A DNA stretch of 64,000 bases from Basidiobolus meristosporus CBS 931.73 (GCA_002104905.1 MCFE01000384.1:19850-83849), one strand, 5' to 3'. Shown: positions 10,495 to 64,000, numbered from the stretch's first letter. The notes: a model not told the origin generated them from the letters alone. Numbers and translations are program-made.

Positions 10495-11269
10495 CTAGAA
10501 GTATAGTTCAGAGTCTCCAAGGCACTCGGCCATGTCAACAGGCTTAAAGCCATATCTTTTGATCACATCGATCGACTCGGCAATGGCTTCGATGGTGCTT
10601 GCATGAATATCATGCTGCAGAGAAATAAAACTTTCGCTACTAGCATCCGCCTTAGAGAGAGCAGCTCGGTAAGCGTCCACCGTCTTTGTCGCGTTCTTTG
10701 TCTGCCAGTCACTGGTATCTAGGTTCCAATGAATCAATTTGAGCTTTTTGGCTCCCAATATATCCAACGTATCACCAGTACAGGCGCCGTAAGGACAACG
10801 GAAATACTGGGGCTTCTTTCCGATGGCATTTTCAATGGCTATGGCCGCTTTATCTACCTCGTCTTCGATTTCTGAAGCTTGGAGTGTGTCTAGGTTGGCA
10901 TGGGTATGGGTATGGGATCCAATATGGTGTCCGTCATTTAATGCCTTTAGGACTACTTCCGGATTCTGTTCCACCACTAGTATTGATCGCATTAGCAGCC
11001 TTGGTGAGACCTGGATTGTTATCATGCAACTTACTTGTTCCTACTACAAAGAATGTTGCGCTTACGCCTGCGACCTTTAAGACCTTTAGTAGCTCTTCAG
11101 TAAGCACAGAAGCGGGCCCATCGTCAAACGTTAAAGCCACCATGCCATTACTAGCGCATTTTTCGTATCTAATGCCTGGTTGAACATCTCGCTTGAGCAG
11201 TGGATGAGACTCGACACTCATGAAGGTAAAAAGCAGAAAAGAGAGAGAAATCGGGATCTTGAAAAGCAT
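10495..11269 (-). CDS. Secreted CE4 polysaccharide (chitin) deacetylase, copy 2
   Basis: Signal peptide plus KR; motifs TFDDGP, HTHTH, RCPY, DTSDW, LQHD; one intron at the same position as in copy 1. Confidence 0.92.
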
Positions 11270-39651: not shown

Positions 39652-39723
39652 GGCTCAATGGTCTAGTAGTATGATTCCTCGTTCGGGTCGAGGAGGTCCC
39701 GGGTTCAATTCCCGGTTGAGCCC
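39652..39723 (+). tRNA. tRNA-Pro(CGG), cassette 1
   Basis: 72-nt cloverleaf GGCTCAA/TTGAGCC, anticodon arm CCTCG-TTCGGGT-CGAGG, T-loop GTTCAAT, downstream T-run. Confidence 0.93.
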
Positions 39724-39803
39724 TTCTTTTCTCACACCTTTTGCAGCTGGTTCATTTTGCTGATTGGCAAGGGTTCGGATACTGAGAAAAATAAAAAAGA
39801 AAG

Positions 39804-39876
39804 CGACCCAGGTGGGGGTCGAACCCACGACTTTCTCCTCCGGAGGGAGACACTCTTTCCACTGAGCTACAGGGCC
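39804..39876 (-). tRNA. tRNA-Arg(CCG), cassette 1
   Basis: 73-nt cloverleaf, anticodon arm TCTCC-CTCCGGA-GGAGA, T-arm GTGGG-TTCGACC-CCCAC; T6:T67 mismatch in the acceptor stem. Confidence 0.92.
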
Positions 39877-40703
39877 ATTTACGAAACTTTTGCACTTCTT
39901 GCCTTCTACAGAGCTATATTGTTGTATCCGATTAGCTAGAAAATGGACTAGAGTGCTTAGTTTGATATCTCTCTGTGATGCCTAAAGTAGAAAATTCGAT
40001 TTTCAAACCAGAGTACTGCTCATAACTTGACTGGAAAGACGCTTAGCCTAGAATGCTTATAAGGCTTTTTATAACTATCCTATGAGAAACTTTGGTCATT
40101 AACATATATGGGTACTTTAAAGGTGTTATCATTCTGCTGGATTCTCTTATGCCATTGTAGTAACAACTTTCTGTCATGGACATGTTTACATAGGTAATGA
40201 TGGTTTGCACATTGGTATTCCGCTACGATGTCTCTGGTATGAGTTAATCACATTGACTGTTAGAGCTGGGTGTGAAATGTTTCAATAACTAATCATTCTT
40301 CCAGCGATTATACTTGGTCCAAATCTACATTGGTAATGAATGTAACCATCTGCTGGAAAGCAAGTGAAAACCAATCTGGTTTCATTGAGTCTAAAAATGC
40401 TTACCATCTCCATTGGCAAGCTTAAATTTTGTAGGGTACAAGTGCTACCTTCGAAGAAGAGTCTTCCTTGAAAAGTGAGCCTTGTTTGTCTCCATCCTCC
40501 AATCAGGATAACTGCATTAAAAGGTAAGCTTGGCATTGTAGGTGATGATTAATGATACACTCAAATCAGACAGATCTAAACTGGCAAGAAAGCGGAATAA
40601 CAGGAATCAAATGTTAAGAGTCAACTACAACATTCTAATGCACACAATGTACAACACATCTACTAACTACGTGTAAAGCAAAAAATGAAACTTTTCCATA
40701 AAT

Positions 40704-40776
40704 GGCCCTGTAGCTCAGTGGAAAGAGTGTCTCCCTCCGGAGGAGAAAGTCGTGGGTTCGACCCCCACCTGGGTCG
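40704..40776 (+). tRNA. tRNA-Arg(CCG), cassette 2
   Basis: Identical to the cassette 1 gene, inverted. Confidence 0.92.
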
Positions 40777-40855
40777 CTTTCTTTTTATTTTTCTCAGTAT
40801 CCGATCCTTTTCAATCAGCAAAAATGAACCATCTGCAAAAGGTGTGAGAAAAGAA

Positions 40856-40927
40856 GGGCTCAACCGGGAATTGAACCCGGGACCTCCTCGACCCGAACGA
40901 GGAATCATACTACTAGACCATTGAGCC
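40856..40927 (-). tRNA. tRNA-Pro(CGG), cassette 2
   Basis: Identical to the cassette 1 gene, inverted. Confidence 0.93.
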
Positions 40928-43658: not shown

Positions 43659-44846
43659 ATGTCTTCTGGTAAGTTTGACTACGAAGCACCAGGAAAGCGC
43701 TGAAATGTCTAACTCGTAACTCGTAACTCTCAGCTCTCTATCTCGCTTGTGATATCGCAAAGGAAAAGGGTCTCCCTTTAGCCAGTAGGCTCACTACCGA
43801 GGATTTCAAGTGGACTCTGGCTTCAGGGTCAGCAACTGAGACAGTCACTTACTACATTCACCTCAAAGATGGAGGGCTCTTGTTTGTCCAACTTGCACAC
43901 TCGAATATTGGGTAACTTTTGTTTCCAGGGTATTTCTTGCTACTTCAGTGTAAACTGACCAACACGTTTGTTCAGCTTATCCCCCACAATCCAAACCTCC
44001 GCTCGATATGTCAGTGGCGATATCCACAAATTCGAAACCGCCAATCACTCCTCACGTTCCTTCAAGCTCAGTGCCGATAGACTTTCAGTGAACCTTGACG
44101 GAATGTCAATCCAGCATGGCAAGGGTAACGAGATGACGGTCGAGTTGTCACTGAAAAACATCCATGTGAATTTCACATTCACTCCCGTCGACAGTGGGTA
44201 TAAAATCGGGGAGGGCAAAACCTTCTTTAACAAGGTGAACAGCAACAATTTCATTTGCCACAAATTCTTACCCGGTGGCCGAGTCACTGGCAAGATCATC
44301 CTTAACGGCAAGGAGAGCGAACTAGCTGGTGATGGTATATTCATCCATGCACTTCTTGGCTTAAAGCCACACGAGGCAGCATCCAAATGCAATCTGATCT
44401 CGCTTCAAAGCGAGAATGCCGCCCTCAGTATGCTTCAATTTGAAACTCCCAGATCGTATGGAAGCAAGGATGTTACTCAGGGCGCGTTTGTATACAATAA
44501 CGAATTGGTTGCTGTCACAGTAGACAACACATCCAGTTTCGTAGCCACCAAACTTGATCCCGACACTAAATACGAGGTCCCCACCGAAATCAAATATATC
44601 TGGTCCGGAGAAACGCTGAAGAAGGAGAAGTTTGTGGCAGAGATGACAGTCAAGCCACAGTTCCTACTTGCCAAGATCGACGTCCTGAGCGAACTGCCAT
44701 TCCTACTCAGAAAGGTGATCCAAACCCTATTTACCAAGCCTTATGTGTACCAGTATTACGACAATGCCGAGGTGCAAGTGGTCATTGGCGAAGAGAAAAT
44801 CAACTTCAATGGCAAAGCCTTTTACGAATGCTCCTTCCTGAACTAG
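43659..44846 (+). CDS. SVF1: Survival factor 1 (Svf1) family protein
   Basis: KWTLASGSATETVTYY..FVQLAHSNIG exon; GIFIHALLGLKPHEAASKCN, KIDVLSELPFLLRK..TKPYVYQY. First exon approximate. Confidence 0.85.
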
Positions 44847-45953: not shown

Positions 45954-46025
45954 GGCTCAATGGTCTAGTAGTATGATTCCTCGTTCGGGTCGAGGAGGTC
46001 CCGGGTTCAATTCCCGGTTGAGCCC
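45954..46025 (+). tRNA. tRNA-Pro(CGG), cassette 3
   Basis: Identical 72-nt gene. Confidence 0.93.
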
Positions 46026-46105
46026 TTCTTTTCTCACACCTTTTGCAGATGGTTCATTTTTGCTGGTTGAAATGGATCGGATACTGAGAAAAATAAAAAA
46101 GGAAG

Positions 46106-46178
46106 CGACCCAGGTGGGGGTCGAACCCACGACTTTCTCCTCCGGAGGGAGACACTCTTTCCACTGAGCTACAGGGCC
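46106..46178 (-). tRNA. tRNA-Arg(CCG), cassette 3
   Basis: Identical 73-nt gene. Confidence 0.92.
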
Positions 46179-47075: not shown

Positions 47076-47984
47076 CTATAATACAATGGGGGGAGATTGG
47101 CCCAAGACTGTTTCAAATGGAAGTGGTGATTTACGTGGTAAGAAAGCAAAAATCCCGTCCATGATTGGAATATCCAGGATTGTCGGTGGCGTTGGGGCTT
47201 GTTCAGGCACCAAATCGATTGGAGCAATGTCATTGGTGTTGCCAGTATCAGGCCTGTTCTCAGGCGGCATAGTGGTTTCAGGATTGCGTTCTTGGTCAAT
47301 TGAAACATCTATCGGCTTTGTCTCTGGTTGATTTAGTTCAACATTGGATTTTTCCTCACGAATGGGGTTGTTCACTTCAGTATCTGGGATTTGGTGATTG
47401 ATTCCTCTCAAGTCACCGTTAAGCTCTGGTCCACTACCATTACTGGTAATAGCTTGATTAGTCGGGCTCGCATCTTTTGGCTCTTTAAAGGTAGTACTAG
47501 AGATTGAATTGACAGTTGGGAATCCGTCCAAAATAGCAGGCTGGCTCTCTATTGTGTCAGCAGGTGGCTGTTCACGGTTGCTAGGGGCTTCAATATTTTT
47601 CGCTTTGCAGCCACCGGTTTTCCTAGTGCTAACGGGGTCGACTACTGTGGGGGGACTACTGTTTACTAAATCGAAATTTTGCTGGATGATCTGATCATTG
47701 CTATTTATGCTCCTATTGATAGGCTCCAGACTTCCATGTTTCGAACAGCTCTTAGGGCAGGTGCACTTGGAGTCAGTCGATTCCTTTCTCTCCCCAGAGC
47801 TCTCCAATGCGGGCACTTTTAAATCAGAACTTGTATGATCCCTATTGCCCAGGGTGTTTTCAGGAGAAGCGCGCACAATTGTATCTAGGGTGGTGGAGGC
47901 GATTTTTTGTCTACAAATAACCGCAGACCTCGCTGTATCCAGCAGTAGTAGACAGACATACAGACAGTAGATTGAAAACCTCAT
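47076..47984 (-). CDS. Hypothetical secreted Pro/Thr/Ser/Asn-rich protein (302 aa)
   Basis: Hydrophobic N-terminus MRFSIYCLYVCLLLLDTARSA, short Cys cluster CTCPKSC, TATA-like sequence upstream at about 48040. Confidence 0.65.
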   Translation of the reverse strand: MRFSIYCLYVCLLLLDTARSAVICRQKIASTTLDTIVRASPENTLGNRDHTSSDLKVPALESSGERKESTDSKCTCPKSCSKHGSLEPINRSINSNDQIIQQNFDLVNSSPPTVVDPVSTRKTGGCKAKNIEAPSNREQPPADTIESQPAILDGFPTVNSISSTTFKEPKDASPTNQAITSNGSGPELNGDLRGINHQIPDTEVNNPIREEKSNVELNQPETKPIDVSIDQERNPETTMPPENRPDTGNTNDIAPIDLVPEQAPTPPTILDIPIMDGIFAFLPRKSPLPFETVLGQSPPIVL

Positions 47985-48664: not shown

Positions 48665-48966
48665 ATGGTAAGTGTGAGTCTACCCCTCGGTTGAACTCGC
48701 GATACTAATGAGTACTAGCAAACCCACAAATTTAAGGTCGCTATGAGTTGTTCTGGTTGCTCCGGTGCGGTTGAACGTGTTTTGAAAAAGCTTGATGGTA
48801 AGCAGGTCGGACCTTTATTGTCATTCGAGTCGCTAATTTCTCAACAGGCGTCGATAATTACGACATTTCTTTGGAGCAACAGACCGTTACTGTACATGGA
48901 GATATTCCACAGGAAACGGTGTTTGAAGCCATCAAGAAGACTGGCAAGGAGGTCACTCCTATCTAG
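48665..48966 (+). CDS. ATX1: Copper chaperone Atx1 (HMA domain)
   Basis: ATG|intron|QTHKFKVAMSCSGCSGAVERVLKKLD|intron|GVDNYDISLEQQTVTV...AIKKTGKEVTPI-stop; MxCxxC and KKTGK motifs; TATATAAA at about 48603. Confidence 0.95.
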
Positions 48967-49059: not shown

Positions 49060-49422
49060 TCACTCATCCACTACGAAGCGGGACGTCAGTTTAGCCTCCC
49101 ACACCACATGGCCTTTGACTGGTTTGCCACCAGATTGTTGAAACATGACTCCTCCGAAGCGCCCATTGGTTGTGCCATTGAAGTCCGCATGAAAGCCAAC
49201 CAACGACTTGACAGCATTATCGAACAATTCCCTGAACTCTTTCCCATAATGCTGAAAAGTGGCTTCGACCTCGGCAGTAATTCGGTTATATTCCTCTTCA
49301 GAGATACCCGCGTTCGCGGCCTCTATCTGAGCCGCGGTGGAAGGAAGTTTTGTCCGGGTGCCTGCTAGGACGCAAGCAAAGTATCCAATAACCAACGGGA
49401 CCAAAAGCAAGTTCATCCGCAT
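49060..49422 (-). CDS. Hypothetical small secreted protein (about 120 aa)
   Basis: MRMNLLLVPLVIGYFACVLAG signal-like start; TATA-like sequence at about 49460; no family recognised. Confidence 0.6.
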   Translation of the reverse strand: MRMNLLLVPLVIGYFACVLAGTRTKLPSTAAQIEAANAGISEEEYNRITAEVEATFQHYGKEFRELFDNAVKSLVGFHADFNGTTNGRFGGVMFQQSGGKPVKGHVVWEAKLTSRFVVDE

Positions 49423-50962
49423 TGCAATTTGCTCCTTGTTGATGGCCCTTATCAACATTATATATGCGGGTAAGTCTTTTCAATGCAATGTGTCAACTGG
49501 CTTATCAAGTTACAGGAGGAACATGATTTGAAACATGATTCGGTTTCAGTATATTCCGCTGATACTTACCATTTCACAAGCATTTCAGCAAAAGTGCCAT
49601 GAATAGTGCGTCATACTGAGGGAAACCCAAATTCACAACAATAAAAGACAAAAATATAGCAGGTACCAATCTTTGGTTGTAAACTACTGTAACCAACTTG
49701 GCATTACTAAGAATTTCTATTGTACCAACACGTACACTTTGTTATCCAATATATGATTGAATCTTTGGACATGTAGAGCACCTCACCACTGTCTACATTC
49801 AATTTTGCAACATTGAATGTTGTAAAAGTAGAGGAATGTGATTATAGCCAGTATTACAGTAATGTACTGTGTAGCTCTATCCCTAGTATATCAAGCATCT
49901 AAAGAAGATTAAAGCCAAATACCCTAATACCCAAGGTTTCTTTTAATTTGCTGACAATGTTGAAAGCTGGAGAATATTGGGCTCTTGTTTAGACAGACAA
50001 GTGTTATTGGCTAGGTAGGTGGAAAGAGAAAAACCCAGACAGGGCTTTTAAGAAATATCCTAAAAAAAGACTCAAGAAAATGCCAGCAGAATACCATTGC
50101 AATATCAGCTGAGCTTCATGTTTCTCTAAACTTACAACTCTCATCACCTCAGCTACTAGCAATTTATCACACAAACATGTAGACTTTGCTGGAGGAGAGT
50201 AATCCACCAAGCACTTGATGCATATTACTATTTGCTGTTTCAACTAGATATTTTTGCAAAAACATGAATGATTAACACCAGCTACATCTTAGCCAATTAC
50301 TGCAAAAAACACCAGAAATATGCCAGAAGAGTAAAAGAAGACTTCCAAGAGGAGAGTTTTCACAGGGGGTACTTCCAACTGACATATTCAGGCAGGCCAC
50401 TTAATAAGTACGTATCAGGTGAAGTGTGTTTTAGAAGTAACTACACATCAAGAATGAAGACAAAATTCATTGAGCTTGGCATACAAAGTCCCATTACTTT
50501 ACTGGTATCAGCAATAAGACTGCAAGTGCTAACACAAAGTATTTGACAGTCTGTGGGGTCACTAGCATTTGAAATAACTGACATAACTTCTGGTTTGCCA
50601 AAGCCATGTGGTGGGATTATTGACCTGGTAGGAGCTGCTCCTTACACCTGAGGCACACCAACCTCAAATTTGACCAATTTGCCAACTGTCACTGCTGACT
50701 ATTCATCAATTAGATCACATGATAATAAGGTTGAGAATTAAGAAGTGATTTGCAGCAGCTTACCAGCTGGGCCTGATATACTGATGGGACTATAGTGATC
50801 CCAGTGCCATGGAAATATATCTGAGGCACTATTAGTGGGGATGACTGGCAAGGAGAAAATGTATTTAAGTCCAAATGGTCAGCACTGGTATAGCATCATC
50901 CAATCTTGCCTCAACTTATTAGTGGTCTTCCCATAAAAACTCATCTCTTTCTTTTAGCTAAA

Positions 50963-51406
50963 ATGAAGTTCTCTTTCAGCAATCTCTCACTGGCCACTGT
51001 TCTTGGTGTCCTTTTCCTTGGAACCACACTCTCCCTTCCCCATGGTCAGGCTGCTGCAGGTACCAGTAAAGTTCAGAAGAGAGGCTACTCATCCTATGAC
51101 TATGATGATTGCTGTGACCCCTGCTATGATCCTTGTTATGATGATTGCTGGGATCCCTGCTATGATCCTTGTTATGATGATTGCTGGGATCCCTGCTGTG
51201 ATCCTTGCTATGATCCTTGCTATGATGACTGCTGTGATCCCTGCTGTGATCCCTGCTGTGATCCCTGCTGTGACCCATGCTGTGATCCTTGCTGTGACCC
51301 ATGCTGTGATCCTTGCTGTGACCCTTGCTGTGATCCCTGCTATGATCCTTGCTATGATGATTGCTGTGACCCATGCTGGGATGATTGCTATGATGACTGC
51401 TGCTGA
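50963..51406 (+). CDS. Secreted Cys/Asp tetrapeptide-repeat precursor, copy 1 (147 aa)
   Basis: Signal peptide MKFSFSNLSLATVLGVLFLGTTLS, propeptide ending KR, GYSSYDYDD, 24 x C-[CYW]-D-[PD], CC-stop; AATAAA at 51513. Confidence 0.8.
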   Translation: MKFSFSNLSLATVLGVLFLGTTLSLPHGQAAAGTSKVQKRGYSSYDYDDCCDPCYDPCYDDCWDPCYDPCYDDCWDPCCDPCYDPCYDDCCDPCCDPCCDPCCDPCCDPCCDPCCDPCCDPCCDPCYDPCYDDCCDPCWDDCYDDCC

Positions 51407-51920
51407 GTTGGGTAGCCTAAAGTGCCCACAGCTAGAATTAGCAATTGCCAGTGCTGCAAGTTCTACTGTGCTGGTTTTGCATCACCTAAATTACTCAATG
51501 CCTACAATTTTGAATAAAGTCAATCATGTTAGCTGATATGTGTATACAATGGATTATGATTTCAGGGATCAGCATATGGCTCTTATTCATCAAGCACTCT
51601 CCCATGAACAGGGCATAAACAAGTGGAGTACAAAAAAGTAAGCTGCTGTTTAGGGTTAGTCAGCATATACCAACCTTTACTTGGGTAGGGGCAACAAAAA
51701 TCAGGCTGTGGTTTAAAAAATTCTTGCAAACCAGCCTACTTTTACACTACTGAGTTGACCTTCATTTCTGCCAGGATTATGGAGCTGCTGGGAATTGAAC
51801 CCTGCACCTGAAGCACTGAGGCCCAGCTCTAAACCCAATTGCCAGATATCACTACTGATAGATCTCATGGCAAATCTGATAATGCTTAGGTGGGCTACCA
51901 AGACAATCAAAGTGATAGCA

Positions 51921-52019
51921 TGGCAGCTGGGCCTGATTTACTGATGGCAGCTGGGCCTGATTTACTGATGGCAGCTGGGCCTGATTTACTGATGGCAGCT
52001 GGGCCTGATTTACTGATGG
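51921..52019. repeat. 24-bp minisatellite (ATGGCAGCTGGGCCTGATTTACTG): 4 copies here, 3 copies in each later spacer, 1 partial copy at the left array edge
   Basis: Seen at about 51921, 53141, 54335, 55540 and (single) 50764. Confidence 0.95.
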
Positions 52020-52194
52020 GACTATAGTGATCTCAGTGTCATGGAAATATATCTGAGGCACTATTAGTGGGGATGACTGACAAGGAGAAAATGTATTTAA
52101 GTCCAAATGGTCAGCACTGGTATAGCATCATCCAATCTTGCCTCAACTTATTAGTGGTCTTCCCATAAAAACTCATCTCTTTCTTTTAGCTAAA

Positions 52195-52626
52195 ATGAAG
52201 TTCTCTTTCAGCAATCTCTCACTGGCCACTGTTCTTGGTGTCCTTTTCCTTGGAACCACACTCTCCCTTCCCCATGGTCAGGCTGCTGCAGGTACCAGTA
52301 AAGTTCAGAAGAGAGGCTACTCATCCTATGACTATGATGATTGCTGTGACCCCTGCTATGATCCTTGTTATGATGATTGCTGGGATCCCTGCTATGATCC
52401 TTGTTATGATGATTGCTGGGATCCCTGCTGTGATCCTTGCTATGATCCTTGCTATGATGACTGCTGTGATCCCTGCTGTGATCCCTGCTGTGACCCATGC
52501 TGTGATCCTTGCTGTGACCCATGCTGTGATCCTTGCTGTGACCCTTGCTGTGATCCCTGCTATGATCCTTGCTATGATGATTGCTGTGACCCATGCTGGG
52601 ATGATTGCTATGATGACTGCTGCTGA
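52195..52626 (+). CDS. Secreted Cys/Asp-repeat precursor, copy 2 (143 aa)
   Basis: As copy 1, with 23 tetrapeptides. Confidence 0.8.
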   Translation: MKFSFSNLSLATVLGVLFLGTTLSLPHGQAAAGTSKVQKRGYSSYDYDDCCDPCYDPCYDDCWDPCYDPCYDDCWDPCCDPCYDPCYDDCCDPCCDPCCDPCCDPCCDPCCDPCCDPCCDPCYDPCYDDCCDPCWDDCYDDCC

Positions 52627-53391
52627 GTTGGGTAGCCTAAAGTGCCCACAGCTAGAATTAGCAATTGCCAGTGCTGCAAGTTCTACTGTGCTGGTTTTGC
52701 ATCACCTAAATTACTCAATGCCTACAATTTTGAATAAAGTCAATCATGTTAGCTGATATGTGTATACAATGGATTATGATTTCAGGGATCAGCATATGGC
52801 TCTTATTCATCAAGCACTCTCCCATGAACAGGGCATAAACAAGTGGAGTACAAAAAAGTAAGCTGCTGTTTAGGGTTAGTCAGCATATACCAACCTTTTA
52901 CTTGGGTAGGGGCAACAAAAATCAGGCTGTGGTTTAAAAAATTCTTGCAAACCAGCCTACTTTTACACTACTGAGTTGACCTTCATTTCTGCCAGGATTA
53001 TGGAGCTGCTGGGAATTGAACCCTGCACCTGAAGCACTGAGGCCCAGCTCTAAACCCAATTGCCAGATATCACTACTGATAGATCTCATGGCAAATCTGA
53101 TAATGCTTAGGTGGGCTACCAAGACAATCAAAGTGATAGCATGGCAGCTGGGCCTGATTTACTGATGGCAGCTGGGCCTGATTTACTGATGGCAGCTGGG
53201 CCTGATTTACTGATGGGACTATAGTGATCTCAGTGTCATGGAAATATATCTGAGGCACTATTAGTGGGGATGACTGACAAGGAGAAAATGTATTTAAGTC
53301 CAAATGGTCAGCACTGGTATAGCATCATCCAATCTTGCCTCAACTTATTAGTGGTCTTCCCATAAAAACTCATCTCTTTCTTTTAGCTAAA

Positions 53392-53823
53392 ATGAAGTTC
53401 TCTTTCAGCAATCTCTCACTGGCCACTGTTCTTGGTGTCCTTTTCCTTGGAACCACACTCTCCCTTCCCCATGGTCAGGCTGCTGCAGGTACCAGTAAAG
53501 TTCAGAAGAGAGGCTACTCATCCTATGACTATGATGATTGCTGTGACCCCTGCTATGATCCTTGTTATGATGATTGCTGGGATCCCTGCTATGATCCTTG
53601 TTATGATGATTGCTGGGATCCCTGCTGTGATCCTTGCTATGATCCTTGCTATGATGACTGCTGTGATCCCTGCTGTGATCCCTGCTGTGACCCATGCTGT
53701 GATCCTTGCTGTGACCCATGCTGTGATCCTTGCTGTGACCCTTGCTGTGATCCCTGCTATGATCCTTGCTATGATGATTGCTGTGACCCATGCTGGGATG
53801 ATTGCTATGATGACTGCTGCTGA
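53392..53823 (+). CDS. Secreted Cys/Asp-repeat precursor, copy 3 (143 aa)
   Basis: Same protein as copy 2. Confidence 0.8.
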   Translation: MKFSFSNLSLATVLGVLFLGTTLSLPHGQAAAGTSKVQKRGYSSYDYDDCCDPCYDPCYDDCWDPCYDPCYDDCWDPCCDPCYDPCYDDCCDPCCDPCCDPCCDPCCDPCCDPCCDPCCDPCYDPCYDDCCDPCWDDCYDDCC

Positions 53824-54587
53824 GTTGGGTAGCCTAAAGTGCCCACAGCTAGAATTAGCAATTGCCAGTGCTGCAAGTTCTACTGTGCTGGTTTTGCATC
53901 ACCTAAATTACTCAATGCCTACAATTTTGAATAAAGTCAATCATGTTAGCTGATATGTGTATACAATGGATTATGATTTCAGGGATCAGCATATGGCTCT
54001 TATTCATCAAGCACTCTCCCATGAACAGGGCATAAACAAGTGGAGTACAAAAAAGTAAGCTGCTGTTTAGGGTTAGTCAGCATATACCAACTTTTACTTG
54101 GGTAGGGGCAACAAAAATCAGGCTGTGGTTTAAAAAATTCTTGCAAACCAGCCTACTTTTACACTACTGAGTTGACCTTCATTTCTGCCAGGATTATGGA
54201 GCTGCTGGGAATTGAACCCTGCACCTGAAGCACTGAGGCCCAGCTCTAAACCCAACTGCCAGATATCACTACTGATAGATCTCATGGCAAATCTGATAAT
54301 GCTAGGTGGGCTACCAAGACAATCAAAGTGATAGCATGGCAGCTGGGCCTGATTTACTGATGGCAGCTGGGCCTGATTTACTGATGGCAGCTGGGCCTGA
54401 TTTACTGATGGGACTATAGTGATCTCAGTGTCATGGAAATATATCTGAGGCACTATTAGTGGGGATGACTGGACAAGGAGAAAATGTATTTAAGTCCAAA
54501 TGGTCAGCACTGGTATAGCATCATCCAATCTTGCCTCAACTTATTAGTGGTCTTCCCATAAAAACTCATCTCTTTCTTTTAGCTAAA

Positions 54588-55022
54588 ATGAAGTTCTCTT
54601 TCAGCAATCTCTCACTGGCCACTGTTCTTGGTGTCCTTTTCCTTGGAACCACACTCTCCCTTCCCCATGGTCAGGCTGCTGCAGGTACCAGTAAAGTTCA
54701 GAAGAGAGGCTACTCATCCTATGACTATGATGATTGCTGTGACCCCTGCTATGATCCTTGTTATGATGATTGCTGGGATCCCTGCTGTGATCCTTGCTAT
54801 GATCCTTGCTATGATGACTGCTGTGATCCCTGCTATGATCCTTGCTATGATGACCATGCTGTGATCCTTGCTGTGATCCCTTGCTGTGATCCATGCTGTG
54901 ATCCTTGCTGTGACCCATGCTGTGATCCTTGCTGTGACCCTTGCTGTGATCCCTGCTATGATCCTTGCTATGATGATTGCTGTGACCCATGCTGGGATGA
55001 TTGCTATGATGACTGCTGCTGA
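54588..55022 (+). CDS. Secreted Cys/Asp-repeat precursor, copy 4 (144 aa, short compensated frameshift)
   Basis: Reads ...CYDD-HAVILAVIP-CCDP...; two compensating indels. Confidence 0.6.
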   Translation: MKFSFSNLSLATVLGVLFLGTTLSLPHGQAAAGTSKVQKRGYSSYDYDDCCDPCYDPCYDDCWDPCCDPCYDPCYDDCCDPCYDPCYDDHAVILAVIPCCDPCCDPCCDPCCDPCCDPCCDPCYDPCYDDCCDPCWDDCYDDCC

Positions 55023-55792
55023 GTTGGGTAGCCTAAAGTGCCCACAGCTAGAATTAGCAATTGCCAGTGCTGCAAGTTGTACTGTGCTGGTTTTGCATCA
55101 CCTAAATTACTCAATGCCTACAATTTTGAATAAAGTCAATCATGTTAGCTGATATGTGTATATGATGGATTAGTGATTTCAGGGATCAGCATATGGCTCT
55201 TATTCATCAAGCACTCTCCCATGAACAGGGCATAAACAAGTGGAGTACAAAAAAGTAAAGCTGCTGTTTAGGGTTAGTCAGCATATACCTAACTTTTACT
55301 TGGGTCTAGGGCAACAAAAATGAGGCTGTGGTTTAAAATATTCTTGCAAACCAGCCTACTTTTACACTACTGAGTTGACCTTCATTTCTGCCAGGATTAT
55401 GGAGCTGCTGGGAATTGAACCCTGCACCTGAAGCACTGAGGCCCAGCTCTAAACCCAACTGCCAGATATCACTACTGATAGATCTCATGGCAAATCTGAT
55501 AATGCTTAGGTGGGCTACCAAGACAATCAAAGTGATAGCATGGCAGCTGGGCCTGATTTACTGATGGCAGCTGGGCCTGATTTACTGATGGCAGCTGGGC
55601 CTGATTTACTGATGGGTACTATAGTGATCTCAGTGTCATAGGAAATATATCTGAGGCACTATTAGTGGAGATGACTGGCAAGGAGAAAATGTATTTAAGT
55701 CCAAATGGTCAGCACTGGTATAGCATCATCCAATCTTGCCTCAACTTATTAGTGGTATTCCCATAAAAACTCATCTCTTTCTTTTAGCTAAA

Positions 55793-56223
55793 ATGAAGTT
55801 CTCTTTCAGCAATCTCTCACTGGCCACTGTTCTTGGTGTTCTTTTCCTTGGAACCACACTCTCCCTTCCCCATGGTCAGGCAGCTGCAGGTACCAGTAAA
55901 GTTCAGAAGAGAGGCTACTCATACTATGACTATGATGATTGCTGTGACCCCTGCTATGATCCTTGTTATGATGATTGCTGGGATCCCTGCTGTGATCCTT
56001 GCTATGATCCTGCTATGATGACTGCTGTGATCCCTGCTGTGACCCATGCTGTGACCATGCTGTGATCCTTGCTGTGATCCCTTGCTGTGATCCATGCTGT
56101 GATCCTTGCTGTGACCCATGCTGTGATCCTTGCTGTGATCCTTGCTGTGATCCCTGCTATGATCCTTGCTATGATGATTGCTGTGACCCATGCTGGGATG
56201 ATTGCTATGATGACTGCTGCTGA
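55793..56223 (+). pseudogene. Copy 5, frameshifted as assembled
   Basis: Frame lost after CYDP (about 56010); terminal TGC TGC TGA at 56215-56223. Could be an assembly error. Confidence 0.5.
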
Positions 56224-56899
56224 GTTGGGTAGCCATAAAGTGCCCACAGCTAGAATTAGCAATTGCCAGTGCTGCAAGTTCTACTGTGCTGGTTTTGCAT
56301 CACCTAAATTACTCAATGCCTACAATTTTGAATAAAGTCAATCATGTTAGCTGATATGTGTATAAAATGGATTATGATTTCAGGGATCAGCATATGGCTC
56401 TTATTCATCAAGCACTCTCCCATGAACAGGGCATAAACAAGTGGAGTACAAAAAAGTAAGCTGCAGTTTAGGGTTAGTCAGCATATACCAACTTTTACTT
56501 GGGTAGGGGCAACAAAAATCAGGCTGTGGTTTAAAAAATTCTTGCAAACCAGCCTACTTTTACACTACTGAGTTGACCTTCATTTCTGCCAGGATTATGG
56601 AGCTGCTGGGAATTGAACCCTGCACCTGAAGCACTGAGGCCCAGCTCTAAACCCAATTGTCAGATATCACTAATGATAGATCTCATGGCAAATCTGATAA
56701 TGCTTAGGTGGGCTATCATATGTTGTGGGTACTGGTGCAGGTGCTTGCCCAACATAGATGCACTTATATTTAGTAATCTAACATCAAGTGAGGGATAACT
56801 TATGCAATACATTAGCAGGTATTATAGCCAGCCAGCTTATGGGGTAGTACTGATCAGACAAGACCAACGGGATAAAACTGAAATAAGGGTTGTAGAGAA

Positions 56900-57800
56900 A
56901 TAAGGAAGTAGACAATATGGCAATGGGTGCATCTGCAGTGGGTGTCACTATGGCCCCACTAAAACATAGCTGCACTTGCCACCTTACACAAACAGAGCCA
57001 GGTGAGTTTGTGACACCCATTAGCTTTGCTCTGCCTTCTGAATATAGCCTGCAAACTAATAGCTCTAAAGGAGGCTCTTGGATGGATTGTGGGCATATCT
57101 CCCCTCACAACAGTATCTTATATGAGACTGGCAAAATCACAATATGCAATGATGCAACACACATAGAAAAAATGCTCCCAATACTTTATAAAGCCCAGTG
57201 AGGCCAGTAACACACTTACTGGTGAATGATGCAATGTTGTGACTTGAGAAGTTGCATGTTTCCACCTATATCAGTAATGGGGGCTTTGAGGGCTTATTGC
57301 TACATCTTGCCAAGATCATTCAGGCATGCAACCTGCTAGATATATGGTACAAATGGACAACTGACATGCAGCTGGCAACATACATCTCAGAGACTGTTCT
57401 GATAAAAGCATGTTTTAACAGTTGCATGACACTCACATTAGCAAATGCCACCATTGCAAAGTGTCCAATATGTCTGGAATCCATCACCATAGGAGGAAAG
57501 CAATGTTCACACCTTGGAAATATTTCAGTAAGTCCCCATCTAAGGAGGTTCATGCAGTCCAACTACTATTGTTAAGTAATAAAGTACTGCACTCATTATC
57601 AATCAAGCACAAACATTTCCAAAATATTTGAAGGCACACATTACAAACATCCAAGAAGCAAGTGCTACCTTGAAGGTAAGAATGATAATGACTTTGCCTT
57701 GGCACTTGATGGATTTTCATCCAACAGGGTTGCAACCAGCAAATCCTCCTGGCCACTCAGTCTCATCAACCATAATTTGCTCCCAATCTTACAATAACAG
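56900..57800 (+). mobile_element. Heavily decayed Ty3/Gypsy-like pol relic (RNase H and integrase fragments)
   Basis: Fragments GASAVG..LTQ..PISFA (RT/RNaseH 'DAS..G..L.Q..PIAF') and PWHLMDFHPTGL (integrase 'PW..MDF.TGL'); weak. Confidence 0.4.
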
Positions 57801-58518
57801 AGCCAAAATTTGATAGTAGTCTCATTGATATCTGGTCCCAAGTTATGCGCTAACCTAGATGGCTACCTGTATCCATTGGAGGGTGAGTCTTGTATGCTAT
57901 TTGGTGGGATATCACTAAATGGTCATTATGCTAAGGTTTGTATTATTATTTACTTTGGAGATACCTGGCCATCAGTAAGATAGTTGGCTTTCTGTGCACA
58001 ATTGACAGTATTGTTGTTGAATGTGTGAGATCCAGGGGATTTGCTCTGTAATTCACACACATTGTTGTTATCCCAACACCAAGGTCAAGAGTATGATCTT
58101 CTGAGAAAGAATGTCCAGAAGTCAGCATGCAACTTCAGCAAGTTGACAAGCTATAAGTCTTTAGCCAGAATATGGAATTAATCAAAAAACAGAGATACTC
58201 AAGGTACAACTAATCTGTTGGAGCAAAAGCTTTCACCTGAGAGCAAGGCACTTTGGCTTCAGTAATATCCCTTTCCTAATGACAAAGTTGTACATGGGAA
58301 ATTGCATCTCAATGAGCCCTTTGAGATACCAGAGAAGTTTGAAAGGGATGGCAAGATGTTACAGAGTGTTTGCTACCCTTTGTACTTCTTATGGGCTCCT
58401 ATCAACACTCATATACATATGCAACAATGCAAGTGCAATGACTGGATGAACTGGATAAGTATTTATTCTGGTGGTCTTCTGAAGCATCTCTACTAAGAAT
58501 ACATTGGAAGTCATATGT

Positions 58519-58800
58519 GGACATTAAAGGAATACTTATCCAGAAGCAGATCACCAATGCCAACTTGACACATTTACAGGCAGCTATTAAGAAAACTCTA
58601 CTACAGTATGCTAGATTTCTCTTGGTCACAGGCCAATTTCTACACCATTCAATACAAAATTCACACAAACAAGAGCCAGAGCACACCTATAAGGGAGACT
58701 AGAATCCAGCAGGGAGAAGGAATATATTGGCTTAGTACCAAAAGGTTCTTTGCAGATATTCAGGAGTTGTTCATGGGAGAAGTGGCAGCAACCAAGCATA
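58519..58800 (+). mobile_element. Diverged repeat (second copy at about 63130-63200 and 63690-63770), possibly a non-LTR RT relic
   Basis: GGACATT..CAGAAG..GATCACCAAT and GCCAGAGCACACCTAT..CTAGAATCCAGCAGGGAGA blocks occur twice; translations include QQG[D/E]GIY. Confidence 0.35.
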
Positions 58801-59348
58801 TGTTTGCAAGATATATATGTTAGCAGTAGTACAAGGTATATGGCAACTTTGCAAGTATCACACCAAAAGACCATAAACTTAAGGTGATAGAAGTATGTCA
58901 ATTGCAGCAGGTCTGTGTGTTTGTAGAGGTTAGCAAGCTGGAGGCCATAATTTTTTTATTTGAGACCAGGGATGTCATGTGATCATCACATCTGTAGGTC
59001 ACCATACTACCATGATAATGCCATGAGATGCTTGCAATGAGGCCATCAAAACACTCTGAAGTTTTTTGTTGTATAAGGCAACTGAATATACAAGCCAATT
59101 AGATCCACTAAATAGTTGTCAAGTGCACTGAGACTGCAACAATTCTGTGCCACTCTTGGCAAATCACCAATCAAGCACCTTGATGCTTTTAGCTTTATTT
59201 GGCAGTAAAATTAGCCAAATGCCATTGTGATCCTGTCATCAGATCAAATAGTTGGTCATGGATTTCAAGCTGCTGGTATTATGAAGGCCTCCAGGCAGGA
59301 TCTTGATTGCTGATCTGGATTGGATCCACCTGCAGGTCCAAAAAATCC

Positions 59349-62300
59349 TCATAGGGAATACCTGTAGGTGTATCTTAAGCAGAAATCAGCAGTTGCTATT
59401 AGGTATCTAAAAATCTGCTTAGCTGCTGCAATATGATCAGATCTATAGTTCTGATTATGCTGGCTGACAACTCCCACTGAGTATAAGATATCTGGAAATG
59501 TTTCAAGCATGATATCCAGCAGACTGCAGAATATAGACTGATACAGAAAGTCAGGCCTTTGCAGTGTTTCTAAGTTATTTGTAGCTATAATAAGATCATC
59601 CACCTTTAGAGCTAACAGAACTGGACTTGCTCTACCTGGCTTATAGTATCCACTATAGTCAGAATTACTCCTTTAGAAATTCAACAATTCCAAATAAGAA
59701 TATGTTCTGTAATTCCAGGCACCTAGTGATTATTCAAGTCCATATGGAGATTTTTGGCTGGCAGACTAAATGGGGCCATCTTGGTCAGCAGGCCCATCAG
59801 GCAGGCTCATATAAATGTTTTCATTAGGTTCTTTATCCAAAAATGCAGCTTCTACAACCATTGATGTATAAAAAACTTATATTTGGCTGCAATGGTCAAT
59901 ATTAATCTGATGCAATTAAGCTTGGCTATTAGTGCAAAGGTCTTGGTGTAGTCAAGTCCTTTTATTTAAGAGTGTCCTTTGGCCACAAGTCTTGCTTTGT
60001 GTCTTTCAATTGAACCATCAGCCTTGTACTCTGACTTAAAGACCCATCTGCATCCAATTAACTTTTGGTTGATTGGTAATTTGACTAAGTCCCAAGTTTG
60101 ATTTCCCATCAAAGCCTGATATTCCTCAGCCATTGAGAACTCCAAAACTTTGTTCAAGGGCTATTTATGGCCTCTTGTACAGTCTGGGGCTCATCAGTAT
60201 GGACTGAACAGGCATAGGCAAGTTTGTACCCTCATCAAAAAAGTAACTTGGGCTATTTCTTGTCCAGTTGGATCTCCTGGCAATTGATAGTGGAATGCTT
60301 GCCCCTGGGAAATTTCTGGGCACTGATTCAGGCTGAAGCACAGATGTAGAGTATTCTGGAGTGAAAATCTTTTACTTTGCTCTGATTCAATTCTGACTTT
60401 TTGTACACTTGAGATCAGATTTTTGACATCATTTGATGTCATTTTCAGCAAAAATTTCGAATTTCCACCAAATAACATATCCCTGGACTTGATCAGCTTC
60501 TTTGCTTTGGTATTGTAGAGTCTGTATGCTTAACTCAGATTGCAGTAGCCCAAAACTATGCACTTACAGTTTTTAGCTAAAATTTTGAGTGATTTCCAAG
60601 CTGTTTTTGGCATATGCTGTACATCTAAATTGCTGTAAGAGTCTTGGAAGTATTGGGAGTGATTGGGAGGACAAGTAGTTTATGTGGCTTTCACTTAAAG
60701 ATTTATTGAATGTTAAAGTGGTATTTTTACTTTACATGGTCTTGGCATACAAAACACGTAGAACAGGCTAAGGAGGGTCCCAAAAACATATGTGCAAAGT
60801 TTGGGCTATTTAGACAACTTGTCTAATTTTCATGTTCTGGGTGAATATTTTAAGTAAATCCTAATAAGAAATTTAGTGGTATTCTCTATGATTTGAAGGT
60901 AATGATCAAAGTGACTAAGTTAGGCAAATATTTAGGTGGAATTACAAATTTTTACACCATAAATACTGTTAGACATTCTACACTTGGTCTGCATCTGTAC
61001 AATGCTTCAAATGATGTAGAATTACAAAGTATTCTGCAATAACTCATATTTTTAAGGTATACAGTTGTGGCAATTGATTCTGCCCAAAAATTGTAGGATA
61101 ATACTTGATTGTGGATTATAAATCTTTCCATATCAATTATTGCACTGTTTGCATGATTGGCCACTCCAGTTTGCTAAGGGGAGTATGGTACAGTAGTGTT
61201 ATGCTTTATCCTATGATTCTGTAGAAGTGGATGAAGAGTTTTGAGGTATGTTCTCCACCATTGTTGGAGCATATTTTCGGGAATACTTTTACCAGTTTCT
61301 CTTTCCACCATGGCTATACACTCCCTGAGCTTGGACAAAGCATCTTCCTTTCACTCCATGAGGTAAACCCACCTGCATCTTGTATAAACATCAATAAAGG
61401 TGATCAAACACCTCATCACACTTAGGATAAATTTTGCACAGGTCCACACAGATCTGAGCAAATTAGATCTAATTTTTTCTTAGTTTTGATTAACCCAAAG
61501 CTCTTGAATGGTTGTCTGGCTTGTTTCTCATATATGCAGTCTTTACAGTGCTCTAAATTAGCTGGAGGATTCATTATCACTCTGGAAATTAGTTGTTCTT
61601 TGATCATTTTGTGCAAATAACCAAAACAGATGTGTCAAAGTCTCCTGCACCCAGGCATTGGTATTTCTTTATTCAAGTCACTTATACTGGCCTCCAGATA
61701 TGATGTATGATGAGCCAACTTGCATAGATTCTGATCTTTGATACCCAAAGCAATATGGGCACTATTCTGATCAGTAATTCTGCATCCACAATTGTCAATG
61801 CTGAAACTGTGGCCTTCTGCAATAGCTTGCTTACAGATAATAGGTTCATGGCTACTTCTGGTACACAGAGTACTTCTATGAAGGGAAGGTAAGGCATCTT
61901 TTGCTACTTCTAAGGTTTACCTGTATAGCTCCTTCTCCCACTGCATCAAGCATTCTATTGTCACCCATGAAAACCTTTGGAAATGGAATCTCTTGATATT
62001 GGGTAAAACATTTTTTTGGTGTGTTAAGTGTTCAGATGCTGCAGAGTCATTGTACCACATCCCAGAGTCCTTGATTGTGGCCTTATTTAGTGCAGATATG
62101 AATAGTCTATCTTCATTTGTTGCATCATCTCCATATTCAGGCATATCCTGCCAACTATCTCTCTTTTTCAAGCATCAGTCTAATGTGAGTCCTTTACCTT
62201 TGCAATAGTTGCCAGACAGGTTGTTGTAGCCTTCAAAGTGTCCTAAGTACATCCTTTGTTGGTTATCACTGCTTATTGAAGCATTTTATTCTCCCTTCAT

Positions 62301-62393
62301 ATTGGTGCATGATTTTCTTAATTCTTCATTCAGGAGCCTTCCATATATAGAATTTGAGGTCAAATCTTCAGTTCTGGACTCTAAGGCTGATAC
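59349..62393 (-). mobile_element. Degenerate Ty1/Copia element (gag C-terminus, protease, integrase, RT), interrupted by two younger insertions
   Basis: VSALESRTEDLT (gag), WYNDSAASEHLT (PR), C..C..KQARQPF..DLCGP and FWAESIATTVYLKN (IN), TWDLVKLP..IGCRWVFK..DGSIERHKARLVAKG (RT); many stops. Confidence 0.92.
60631..60959 (-). mobile_element. Solo LTR (329 bp) with 5-bp target-site duplication
   Basis: TAAAT|TGCTGTAA...TTACACCA|TAAAT; removing it restores the integrase reading LTVF-RCTAY; similar to the LTR at 62394. Confidence 0.88.
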
Positions 62394-63130
62394 TGTGGTA
62401 GAAATTTGTAATCCAACCTAAATACTTGCCTAACTTAATCACTTGGAGCATCACCTTCAAATCCTAGGGAGTACTGACCAAATCCCTTGTTGGGATTTAC
62501 TTAGAATATTTTCAAAAAAATACCAGGTACCCAGAACATAAAAATTCTCAAAGTTGTCCAAACAGCCCCAAAGCTTGCACACATATTCTGAGGCCTTCCT
62601 GAAGCTTCTCTATGCATTTGGCATGCCTGGATCATGCAAATGTATAAATACTACCTTTACATTCAATAAATCATTAAGTGAAAATCACATAATCTACTTG
62701 TATCCCATTCACTTCCAATATTGCCAAAACTACTATAATAGGTTATGAGCTGCAAGCTGTCACTCTCTGCAATCTCTACTTGGCTATTACTGAAATTTCT
62801 TACACTGCTGAAAAGTTGGATGGATCTAACTATCAAGTGTGGAAGGTCAAGATGGTGATGCTGCTACAGGAAAGAGGCTGTTGGGATATTTTCACAAGAG
62901 AAGACTGCCCTCCAAAAAATGTGGGAGAGGAAGCTTTAAAGTACCAGACAAAAGAACAAAGTGCCTTTAACTGTATTTGCCTTGATGTCAAAGACAAACT
63001 TATTATACATGCTCAAGTGTAAAAACAGCAAAGAATACCTGGAAGGCATTAGAAGACACCTACCAGTCATGTTCAGCTGCTAAGAAAATGCATCTGAGAC
63101 AAAAATTTTTTACTACAAAGATACTGCCAG
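62394..63130 (+). mobile_element. 5' end of a second Copia element: LTR (62394-62740), PBS, gag N-terminus
   Basis: The LTR aligns with the reverse complement of 60631-60959 and contains TATAAATA and AATAAA. It is followed by GGTTATGAGC (copia-type tRNA-iMet-half PBS) and gag EKLDGSNYQVWKVKM..LLQERGCWD..AKNTWKAL. Confidence 0.82.
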
Positions 63131-64000
63131 GACATTTTAGGAATATATTCTCAGAAGTGGATCACCAATACCAACTTAACATATCTACAGCTGTTGTGCT
63201 AGGTGTTTATAACTGTATTTGAGCAACTATACTACAAACATAAAGCTGAATGCTTAGATCTCTGCCACTACTATATCCATTCTTGACTTTATCTTGCTTG
63301 GTATGTGGAGCATATTGGGCCTTGCTTCACCTTTTGGGAGTTTACTATGTAGTAGATGTGTGGAGAGATAGGAAGACAAGTCAAGTTGCAAGTACTACAA
63401 TATCCTAATCTCCTCATGAATATTACCTTCAAGTCTAACATGGATGTGATGAGTTGGTACATGTAGGACAGCCAGAAAGAGTTGGAAAATACTGAGGACA
63501 AATGTGCACATGGAGACACCTATGCCTATGGCATTAAGAAGCTAAGCAGCCCCAATGTGTGGGTAATCAGTTAAGTAATGCAAACTTGGGTTGGGTGCAA
63601 CAAGCAACTTATTTGTATAAGGAAAACTATACTTCAGTGTGCCTGATTTCTCATGGTCACAAGCTAACTTCTACACTATTCAATACGGAATTCACTCAAA
63701 CAGAAGCCAGAGCACACCTATACAAGGCACTAGAATCCAGCAGGGAGATGGAATATATTAGACTTGTACTGTTGGGTAGTGCCACATTGAGCCATGGGTG
63801 CCAATTGATGCCATAGTGTGCCAGGGAGGCTAAGTGAGCCTATACTTGGCCACAGAGTGTGAAACATAGCTCTGCATCCTCATATAGAGCCACCTCTGTA
63901 TTGCACCCATTGTGTTGGAGAAAGTCCATTTTTTGACCTTTTTTTAGGTCAATGTTGTGCAGGATGTGTAAGAGTACAAATGGATTAAAGATATGCATCT

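Follow-up and report, generated by a model that had tools for sequence, protein, structure and literature searches.

Five direct (head-to-tail) units of about 1.2 kb each, at positions 50764-56800 of the window (the whole 64,000-nucleotide stretch analysed, from contig MCFE01000384.1 of Basidiobolus meristosporus CBS 931.73), carry what the sequence indicates is a genuine gene family, arranged in tandem arrays and known so far from Basidiobolus only. The evidence favours reading its predicted product in a frame, here termed A, other than the overlapping frame B of the public annotation. The explanation preferred for the whole, with slightly less than even confidence, is that amplified frame A genes encode a disulfide-cross-linked, secreted polyanionic material of the surface or matrix.

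The five-copy tandem array described in an earlier note is real (Table 1). Units 1-3 have a mutual identity of 99.5-99.9%, gene and spacer alike, and the similarity that defines the array ends at approximately 56718-56800. A 24-nt minisatellite lies directly 5' of each promoter, and the boundary of the array falls inside it. The array would have grown by unequal exchange at this minisatellite, its middle being kept uniform while the downstream edge, represented by units 4 and 5, decays. The polyadenylation-type hexamer placed about 105 bp downstream of the gene in the same note was also found. Within the window, a tRNA-like piece in the spacer is confined to the five units; identification of the spacer as a SINE was dropped as a firm claim, the match being sub-threshold and no copy occurring outside the array in the window. 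A search near the contig end found no telomere repeats.

Table 1. Features of the array and its surroundings, in window positions; the lengths of units 1-4 are also the spacings between successive unit starts.
Feature	Position	Strand	Remarks
Atx1-like HMA copper-chaperone gene	48722-48966		1.8 kb upstream of array
Unit 1 (promoter, gene, spacer, 24-nt minisatellite)	50764-51995	+	1232 nt
TATA-like TATTTAA (putative, read from sequence)	50862-50868	+	about 95 nt 5' of ATG; in all units
Gene copy 1, frame A	50963-51406	+	147 aa; residues 1-30 signal-like
Copy 1, KR ending pro-piece	51077-51082		mature chain from 51083
Copy 1, repeat body	51110-51397		24 twelve-base repeats, then terminal CC and stop
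Public gene model, frame B, overlapping	51042-51536	+	164 aa; hydrophobic repeat; probably wrong frame
AATAAA	51513-51518	+	106 nt past copy 1 stop (51404-51406); in all units
Weak tRNA-like piece in spacer	51781-51830	-	sub-threshold in Rfam
24-nt minisatellite with CAGCTG	51920-52019	+	4.2 copies
Unit 2	51996-53192	+	1197 nt; identity 99.6% to unit 1, 99.9% to unit 3
Gene copy 2, frame A	52195-52626	+	143 aa
Sister frame B model	52274-52756	+	
24-nt minisatellite tract	53141-53216		3.2 copies
Unit 3	53193-54388	+	1196 nt
Gene copy 3, frame A	53392-53823	+	143 aa; protein identical to copy 2
Sister frame B model	53471-53953	+	
24-nt minisatellite tract	54336-54411		3.2 copies
Unit 4	54389-55593	+	1205 nt; about 98% identity to units 1-3
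Gene copy 4, frame A open	54588-55022	+	9-residue out-of-frame patch at 54855-54881 from -1 and +1 indels
24-nt minisatellite tract	55540-55615		3.2 copies
Unit 5	55594-56799	+	about 94% identity to other units; likeness stops near 56718
Gene copy 5, frame A broken	55793-56226 (end approximate)	+	the two indels of copy 4 and an extra 1-base deletion

The earlier proposal that each unit is a self-contained gene holds for units 1-3, in which the open reading frames are intact from their ATGs (50963, 52195 and 53392), but not for unit 4, which is patched, or unit 5, whose frame is broken. In unit 4, a one-base loss and a one-base gain, 27 nt apart and both in homopolymer runs, leave a patch reading HAVILAVIP. 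An additional one-base deletion near 56009 in unit 5 breaks frame A, with the first stop at 56065. The CBS 931.73 assembly derives from PacBio sequencing (PMC7466969), and a 2025 preprint describes it as hybrid; because PacBio data underlie the assembly, the additional deletion could be a consensus error, but the two indels common to units 4 and 5 are probably genuine.

Each intact unit would be a small intron-less gene, translated in frame A into a pre-pro-protein consisting of a signal peptide and about ten pro-residues up to a Lys-Arg for cleavage by a kexin-type protease, after which 103-107 residues would form the mature chain. By inspection, the N-terminus has a Lys as its second residue, followed by a hydrophobic core (residues 8-25) and then a small-residue cleavage region; the single KR, at residues 39-40, is preceded by PHGQA-AAG. 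This layout, a signal-like N-terminus, a short pro-piece with KR and a repeat body, corresponds to the precursor first envisaged, as does the mature sequence of copies 1-3: GYSSYDYDD, followed by C-[C/Y/W]-D-[P/D] repeated 24 times (copy 1) or 23 times (copies 2 and 3), followed by CC. The composition previously given for copy 2 is likewise exact, with 36 C, 32 D, 17 P, 12 Y, 3 W, 2 S and 1 G in 103 aa, and no K, R or H. Such a chain is approximately 35% Cys, 31% Asp and 15% aromatic, with a net charge of about -33. As every tetrapeptide opens with Cys, this residue recurs at each fourth position. Counting against the surface or matrix reading, the mature chain has only two Ser and no Thr, so that the O-mannosylated tracts of these residues typical of the proteins of fungal walls are missing, as is a GPI-type C-terminus. 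AlphaFold2, run on the single sequence, gave a pLDDT of 46.6, too low for the model to be of use.

The public annotation reads units 1-3 in frame B, as a hydrophobic protein of 160-164 aa, and the frame A product is absent from the public record as a called gene. Codon-usage likelihood places both frames inside the range of real genes and hence does not separate them. Across the 24 in-register 12-nt repeats, the variation in frame A amounts to 0.81, 1.77 and 3.10 bits at codon positions 1, 2 and 3, with 47% of the differences between codons being synonymous. No variation occurs at repeat positions 1, 2, 4, 7 and 8, which fixes the first Cys and the Asp. When the same repeats are read in frame B, the variation lies on second codon positions and no difference is synonymous. 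Contigs from a second isolate provide a further comparison. One variant preserves the leader sequence LPHGQA through five synonymous changes over six codons, whereas all frame B residues are changed there, and another variant has lost the frame B ATG. In the register of frame A, one variant runs on as DCYDDDCCYD and another ends TGC-TGA; the match of one contig starts at the frame A ATG, 50963. Furthermore, the two indels of unit 4 restore frame A while leaving frame B with stops. The reading frame chosen in the earlier note is therefore favoured by the third-position variation, the synonymous leader changes, the loss of the frame B ATG and the structure of unit 4. The frame B model, judged from these patterns, is probably in the wrong frame, and its selection by the annotator would be explained by its being the longer open reading frame. 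The TATA-like box, the AATAAA and the hydrophobic core of the N-terminus also favour a gene here.

Depth in other sequencing runs points to amplification well beyond the five copies of the array. From a small 2016 run (X1) the unit assembles, including variants 91-93% identical, but the single-copy flank does not. In two 2013 runs of the second isolate (X6 and X7), single pieces of the CDS reach contig word depths of 1200-2300, compared with 24.7 for the flank contig, the only one that could be placed and, at 81% identity, perhaps a paralogue. In this isolate, the stretch from the ATG to the poly(A) signal is matched at high depth, while no match at a threshold of at least 80% was found for the bins of the promoter or for the first bin of the spacer. 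Read from contig depths, one flank contig of uncertain orthology and runs whose DNA label ('DNA?') is a guess, these data would put the copy number of two isolates in the tens to hundreds.

No relative with both leader and repeat was detected by a word-indexed search of 5.8 billion proteins or by running phmmer exhaustively against 1.84 billion representatives. Both returned low-complexity look-alikes only, mostly Asp-Pro-Thr repeats without Cys, none of which credibly spans the leader. A Pfam scan with E values up to 10 found nothing above threshold, the sole match being MSSP (E = 0.094; 12.8 bits, where the cut-off is 21.2). The earlier note, which did not recognise the family, agrees with these results. 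Neighbours sought by features in the ESM Atlas were rejected, as the best scores (0.68 for frame A, 0.80 for frame B) are both in the chance range. In the literature, no paper was found on such a protein in Basidiobolus, and a search with the motif string gave unrelated matches only.

Under the preferred explanation, the chain would pass through the oxidising secretory pathway, as a consequence of which its cysteines, even in number (36 or 38), would form disulfides. The bulk extracellular product would be a rigid polyanion, kinked by Pro and cross-linked by disulfides, on the surface of cells or spores or in a secreted matrix; its carboxylates could hold divalent cations, its Tyr and Trp residues would be open to stacking or oxidative cross-links, and the high copy number would serve high output. 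High-sulfur keratin-associated proteins and the male-specific sperm proteins of Drosophila (MSSP in Pfam) offer a parallel in their short Cys-Cys-x-Pro or Cys-Gly-Pro repeats with approximately 30-40% Cys, whose disulfides are believed to harden a matrix. However, those proteins are intracellular, of animal origin and non-acidic, and the MSSP match, scoring below the family cut-off, is compositional and does not reflect homology. In the Cys-rich domain of secreted cnidarian minicollagens, C-X3-C-X3-C-X3-C-X3-CC, a switch from internal to intermolecular disulfides hardens a pressure-bearing wall. The Basidiobolus chain resembles this domain in having Cys at each fourth residue, Pro in the spacing, a terminal CC and predicted secretion, a likeness of pattern only. 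By contrast, minicollagens have one six-Cys domain flanking a collagen Gly-X-Y helix and polyproline tracts, rather than 23-24 consecutive units with Asp in every one, and no Gly-X-Y region is found here, there being a single Gly in the mature chain. The sole database proteins with runs of C-x-[D/E]-P tetrapeptides are bacterial surface or spore-type proteins (P0040, P0001, P0005 and P0006), in which CYDPCEEP precedes SpaA/SdrD_B domains (P0040) and CCKPCCDP precedes a weak match to BclA_C that stays below threshold (P0006). Unlike the fungal sequence, the repeat in these stalks links to folded domains; the leader is not common to the two, which come from different domains of life, and the likeness is likely to be convergence.

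The main rival, which appears rather unlikely, is that the product is an extracellular or vesicular metal sponge, comparable to a gene-encoded phytochelatin or a secreted metallothionein, in which reduced thiols and carboxylates would bind Cu, Zn or Cd and copy number would set tolerance in the manner of yeast CUP1. The abundance of Cys and Asp, the many CC pairs and the identical tandem units, with depths indicating many more copies, are all consistent with this, as is the low oxygen of the animal gut. Conversely, the cysteines would be oxidised in the secretory pathway. Metallothioneins, which are cytosolic and leaderless, have few or no aromatic residues, whereas here 12 Tyr and 3 Trp occur in 103 residues, no Lys balances the thiolate clusters, and a hydrophobic core follows the N-terminal Lys; nor was any metallothionein family matched in the Pfam scan. 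The comparison with metallothioneins made in the earlier note is fair as a contrast only. That with CUP1 extends further: it too is a small Cys-rich gene in near-identical head-to-tail units of 1-2 kb, with a copy number that is apparently strain-variable, and units 1-3, as complete genes with near-identical sequences, have the form of a CUP1-type dosage array. Yet CUP1 is cytosolic and copper-induced, without a signal peptide or aromatic residues, and shares no sequence similarity with the acidic, aromatic-rich Basidiobolus chain and its predicted secretion leader. The analogy applies to array architecture and does not carry over to regulation.

The copper-chaperone gene upstream of the array could also be counted in favour of metal binding. 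It is one of the called neighbours, the others being Svf1 and two Pfam-less genes (302 and 132 aa), with nothing called downstream. In B. ranarum the HMA gene occupies the same place, and the contig contains no CxDP sequence in the 1.9 kb beyond the last shared gene, where it ends; the other B. ranarum contig ends 450 nt past Svf1. Consequently, adjacency of the HMA gene to the array looks ancestral and coincidental. Thiolate metal binding need not conflict with a role in the surface or matrix. A more elaborate version, by analogy with CUP1 and also unlikely, would be a secreted, ribosomally encoded counterpart of phytochelatin, made from hundreds of gene copies for bulk export. In the vertebrate gut, where oxygen is low, this thiol and carboxylate polymer would buffer or capture metals or starve competing bacteria of them, and selection would tune the size of the array.

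It is improbable that frame A is not a working gene, the 1.2-kb unit being instead a satellite-like repeat with an untranslated or decaying open reading frame, or the frame B hydrophobic protein being real. Damage to two of the five units and the annotation's choice of frame B would fit this, and all three non-stop frames are open, as a 12-nt repeat without stops allows. However, the third-position and synonymous pattern fits frame A only, and the greater length of frame B would account for the annotator's choice. The second isolate, moreover, keeps the leader via synonymous changes without keeping frame B residues or ATG, and its deep match covers the gene but not the promoter or the first part of the spacer.

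Least probable, and quite doubtful, is a precursor of small peptides. Cutting of its 17 Asp-Pro bonds, either by acid, to which they are labile, or by a prolyl protease, would release Cys tetra- or octapeptides that serve in the gut as signals, chelators or antimicrobials. The signal peptide, pro-piece, dibasic KR and repeated body do resemble Kex2-processed fungal precursors (alpha-factor, Ustilago Rep1, ustiloxin-type RiPP), and precursors of alpha-factor and apidaecin are among the weak neighbours given by a protein language model (scores 0.57-0.61), but shuffled sequences also reach Atlas scores in that range. The fungal precursors have a dibasic site between all their repeats, where this chain has a single KR ahead of the polymer and neither K nor R beyond it. 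No modifying-enzyme gene (UstYa/DUF3328 or tyrosinase type) was found among the called genes beside the array, and Asp-Pro hydrolysis is slow at ambient temperature.

If the product is made, its composition, two thirds Cys and Asp, would place it among the most extreme polypeptides in nature, and few protein-coding families so far seen in early-diverging fungi would be as strongly amplified. Two things have kept it from notice: the public annotation, probably in the wrong frame, and a mature chain that, having no Lys or Arg, is invisible to trypsin-based proteomics. It also serves as an example of mis-annotation in repeat genes with several open frames. Metal-binding or cross-linkable peptide materials may find a natural template in it, and it offers a concrete and inexpensive target for establishing what a gut-dwelling, occasionally pathogenic fungus places on its surface or in its surroundings.

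Repeat finding and alignment bear out the earlier note's claim of a five-copy tandem array: five direct, head-to-tail units start at 50764, 51996, 53193, 54389 and 55594, and similarity between units stops near 56718-56800. The order within each unit is TATTTAA, ATG, ORF, AATAAA, spacer and minisatellite. In alignments, units 1-3 are 99.5-99.9% identical, gene and spacer alike, with identity to these three falling to ~98% for unit 4 and ~94% for unit 5. On its left the array begins within the minisatellite, and on its right it stops just short of one, an arrangement that fits growth of the array by unequal exchange at this 24-nt element. The suggestion that each unit is a self-contained gene holds for the intact ORFs of units 1-3, but not for the remainder: unit 4 has lost one base and gained another 27 nt away, which leaves a nine-residue out-of-frame patch (54855-54881) before the frame is restored, and unit 5 has both indels plus a further 1-base deletion near 56009 that breaks the frame. 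Because of these indels, the tally of gene copies is three intact, one altered and one broken.

Features of the array and its upstream neighbourhood, in window coordinates (add 19849 for record coordinates on MCFE01000384.1; the window reaches the end of the contig)
Feature	Position	Strand	Remarks
Svf1	43659-44846		upstream of the array
302-aa gene, Pfam-less	47076-47984	-	
Atx1-like HMA-domain (copper chaperone) gene	48722-48966	+	64 aa; 1.8 kb upstream of the array
132-aa gene	49060-49458	-	
TATA-like TATTTAA, unit 1	50862-50868	+	~95 nt 5' of ATG
Start codon ATG, unit 1	50963	+	ORF length per unit 143-147 codons
AATAAA, unit 1	51513-51518	+	106 nt 3' of the stop, agreeing with the ~105 bp of the earlier note
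Spacer in each unit			~380 nt, between AATAAA and minisatellite
24-nt minisatellite, CAGCTG core	51920-52019 and equivalent place in each unit		3-4 copies, just 5' of each promoter
Frame-B public gene model, unit 1	51042-51536	+	ATG 51042; 164 aa
Frame-B public gene model, unit 2	52274-52756	+	ATG 52274; 160 aa
Frame-B public gene model, unit 3	53471-53953	+	ATG 53471; 160 aa

The public models (GCA_002104905.1) do not use the frame of the Cys/Asp protein (frame A); in units 1-3 they follow an overlapping +1 frame (frame B), leaving units 4 and 5 uncalled. That the annotator chose frame B would be explained by its longer ORF; the frame-B product is a hydrophobic AVIP/AMIL repeat without a Pfam match, present letter-for-letter in the ESM Atlas. 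Across 24 in-register copies of the 12-nt repeat, positions 1, 2, 4, 7 and 8 are invariant. Read in frame A, the repeat varies by 0.81, 1.77 and 3.10 bits at the first, second and third codon positions, with synonymous changes making up 47% of the codon differences; read in frame B, it shows no synonymous difference and varies most at second codon positions. The paired indels of unit 4 restore frame A and leave stops in frame B. Further variants come from two 2013 runs under the same species label (X6 and X7, for which DNA is a guessed type label); these runs are probably the Illumina data that PMC7466969 describes for isolate B9252. One variant retains LPHGQA in frame A despite five synonymous changes in six codons, with all frame-B residues altered; a second lacks the ATG of frame B, a third reads DCYDDDCCYD after Asp49, and a fourth ends with TGC-TGA in the register of frame A. 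Furthermore, the match of one contig of this second isolate starts at 50963, the frame-A ATG. On these patterns of variation, frame A is very probably the correct frame.

Translation of units 1-3 gives an N-terminus with Lys followed by a hydrophobic core (residues 8-25), PHGQAAAG and a short pro-piece closing with KR (residues 39-40). The mature chain matches the description in the earlier note: GYSSYDYDD is followed by C-[C/Y/W]-D-[P/D] tetrapeptides, 24 in copy 1 and 23 in copies 2-3, and a terminal CC, and the composition reported for copy 2 agrees exactly (computed mass 11.8 kDa, net charge ~-33 at pH 7). A word-indexed search of 5.8 billion proteins returned seven weak matches, all short Cys/Pro runs, and an exhaustive phmmer search of 1.84 billion representatives returned 833, nearly all Asp-Pro-Thr-style low complexity lacking Cys. 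The only phmmer match with a run of the same motif (P0040, 16 units) has SpaA and SdrD_B domains and a CYDPCEEP stalk. Three other database proteins (P0001, P0005 and P0006) begin with CCKPCCDP, and among them P0006 alone has a BclA_C match, weak and sub-threshold. The leader of the array protein is absent from all matches in both searches, and the Pfam scan gave MSSP only, below threshold; the family, which the earlier note had not recognised, thus yielded no relative in either protein set and no Pfam assignment above threshold. The best ESM Atlas feature neighbour scored 0.68, AlphaFold2 gave a pLDDT of 46.6, and no paper on such a Basidiobolus protein was found. Known classes were also set aside: a metallothionein by the aromatics and leader, no family having matched; a Kex2 repeat precursor by the single KR; and a keratin-associated/MSSP protein by the sub-threshold match and a different cellular compartment. 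Cysteine spacing is the sole feature shared with the minicollagen cysteine-rich domain, and the likeness to the yeast CUP1 array is one of architecture.

The abundance of the unit in other sequencing runs was also studied. Four small 2016 runs (X1-X4) contain 84-88% of its words; in X1, compared in detail over 0.49 million letters of contigs, the unit occurs at depth 6-20, some of its variants being 91-93% identical, and nothing matches the adjacent single-copy flank, which suggests that the source strain has many copies. In X6/X7, the flank is represented by one contig only (depth 24.7, 81% identical), and single pieces of the coding region reach depths of 1200-2300; summed depth is ~6,700 at the start of the mature region and ~3,200 over the 3' UTR. 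In X6/X7, no match of at least 80% covers the promoter bins (50717-50918) or the beginning of the spacer (51626-51726); the later spacer and minisatellite are matched, the latter at a summed contig depth of ~50,000-62,000, far above the gene, so that it either belongs to something more widespread or marks an array junction that recurs. A low-coverage 2022 run (X5) contains three near-identical pieces. More than one isolate thus carries the gene in multiplied form, with copies numbering somewhere between tens and a few hundred. This rough estimate sets contig depth, which does not count copies directly, against a baseline of one contig whose orthology is uncertain, and word depth is inflated by repeats.

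The Svf1-like protein encoded upstream of the array is 100% identical to one from B. meristosporus CBS 931.73, and its nearest relative from another species comes from B. ranarum (81-85% identity), a contig of which has the identical four-gene order of Svf1, Pfam-less protein (302/364 aa), HMA and small protein (132/116 aa). No CxDP sequence is found in this contig, which ends 1.9 kb past the shared genes. By inspection, signal-like N-termini are seen in the 302-aa ORF and, in B. ranarum, in the counterpart of the 132-aa gene. On the 3' side, the contig ends after 7 kb of AT-richer sequence (56800-64000, GC 37-42%) that contains neither a called gene nor a telomere repeat. Elsewhere in the window, 50057-50165 in the left flank is matched by many X6/X7 contigs (summed depth ~1,600 vs 24.7 for the flank contig) and is probably a dispersed repeat. 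Three tRNA-Pro(CGG)/tRNA-Arg(CCG) pairs, on opposite strands within each pair, lie at 39652-40927 and 45954-46178, two of them forming an inverted repeat around ~820 bp. ORFs at 960-2150 (-) and 28682-30013 (-) have in common a repeated motif of the type YPRAFC...GNRW.YE..CN.L.WKLA.LN and look like a paralogous family; the convergent, mutually similar ORFs at 9909-10382 (+) and 10495-11025 (-) resemble, on visual inspection, polysaccharide (chitin) deacetylase domains.

A cleavable signal peptide directs a chain into the ER, where cysteines are oxidised, and kexin-type proteases cleave after KR in the late Golgi. In the array protein, the even number of cysteines (36 or 38) would form disulfides, and Cys at every fourth residue with Pro kinks would give a stiff, heavily cross-linked polyanion, whose 32 carboxylates could hold Ca2+ or other cations. 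Tyr and Trp might pack against polysaccharide or, on oxidation, form additional cross-links; in Zoopagomycota, secreted tyrosinases serve as a secretome marker (PMC9391592). A surface or matrix material is accordingly only tentatively favoured from the sequence, uncertainty over expression being counted in. The main rival, a putative thiolate metal sponge, accounts for Cys and Asp but leaves the aromatics, the oxidising export route and the missing Lys unexplained, and is unlikely; given the conserved gene order in B. ranarum, the HMA gene is an ancestral neighbour and supports a metal role weakly at best. A non-functional array, or one read in frame B, is improbable beside the codon-level variation in frame A, and cleavage of the chain, with its single KR, into small peptides is slightly more so. 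For a surface or matrix material, bulk demand would explain the high copy number of this orphan gene family, which is itself real and striking, and which the public record very probably mis-frames.
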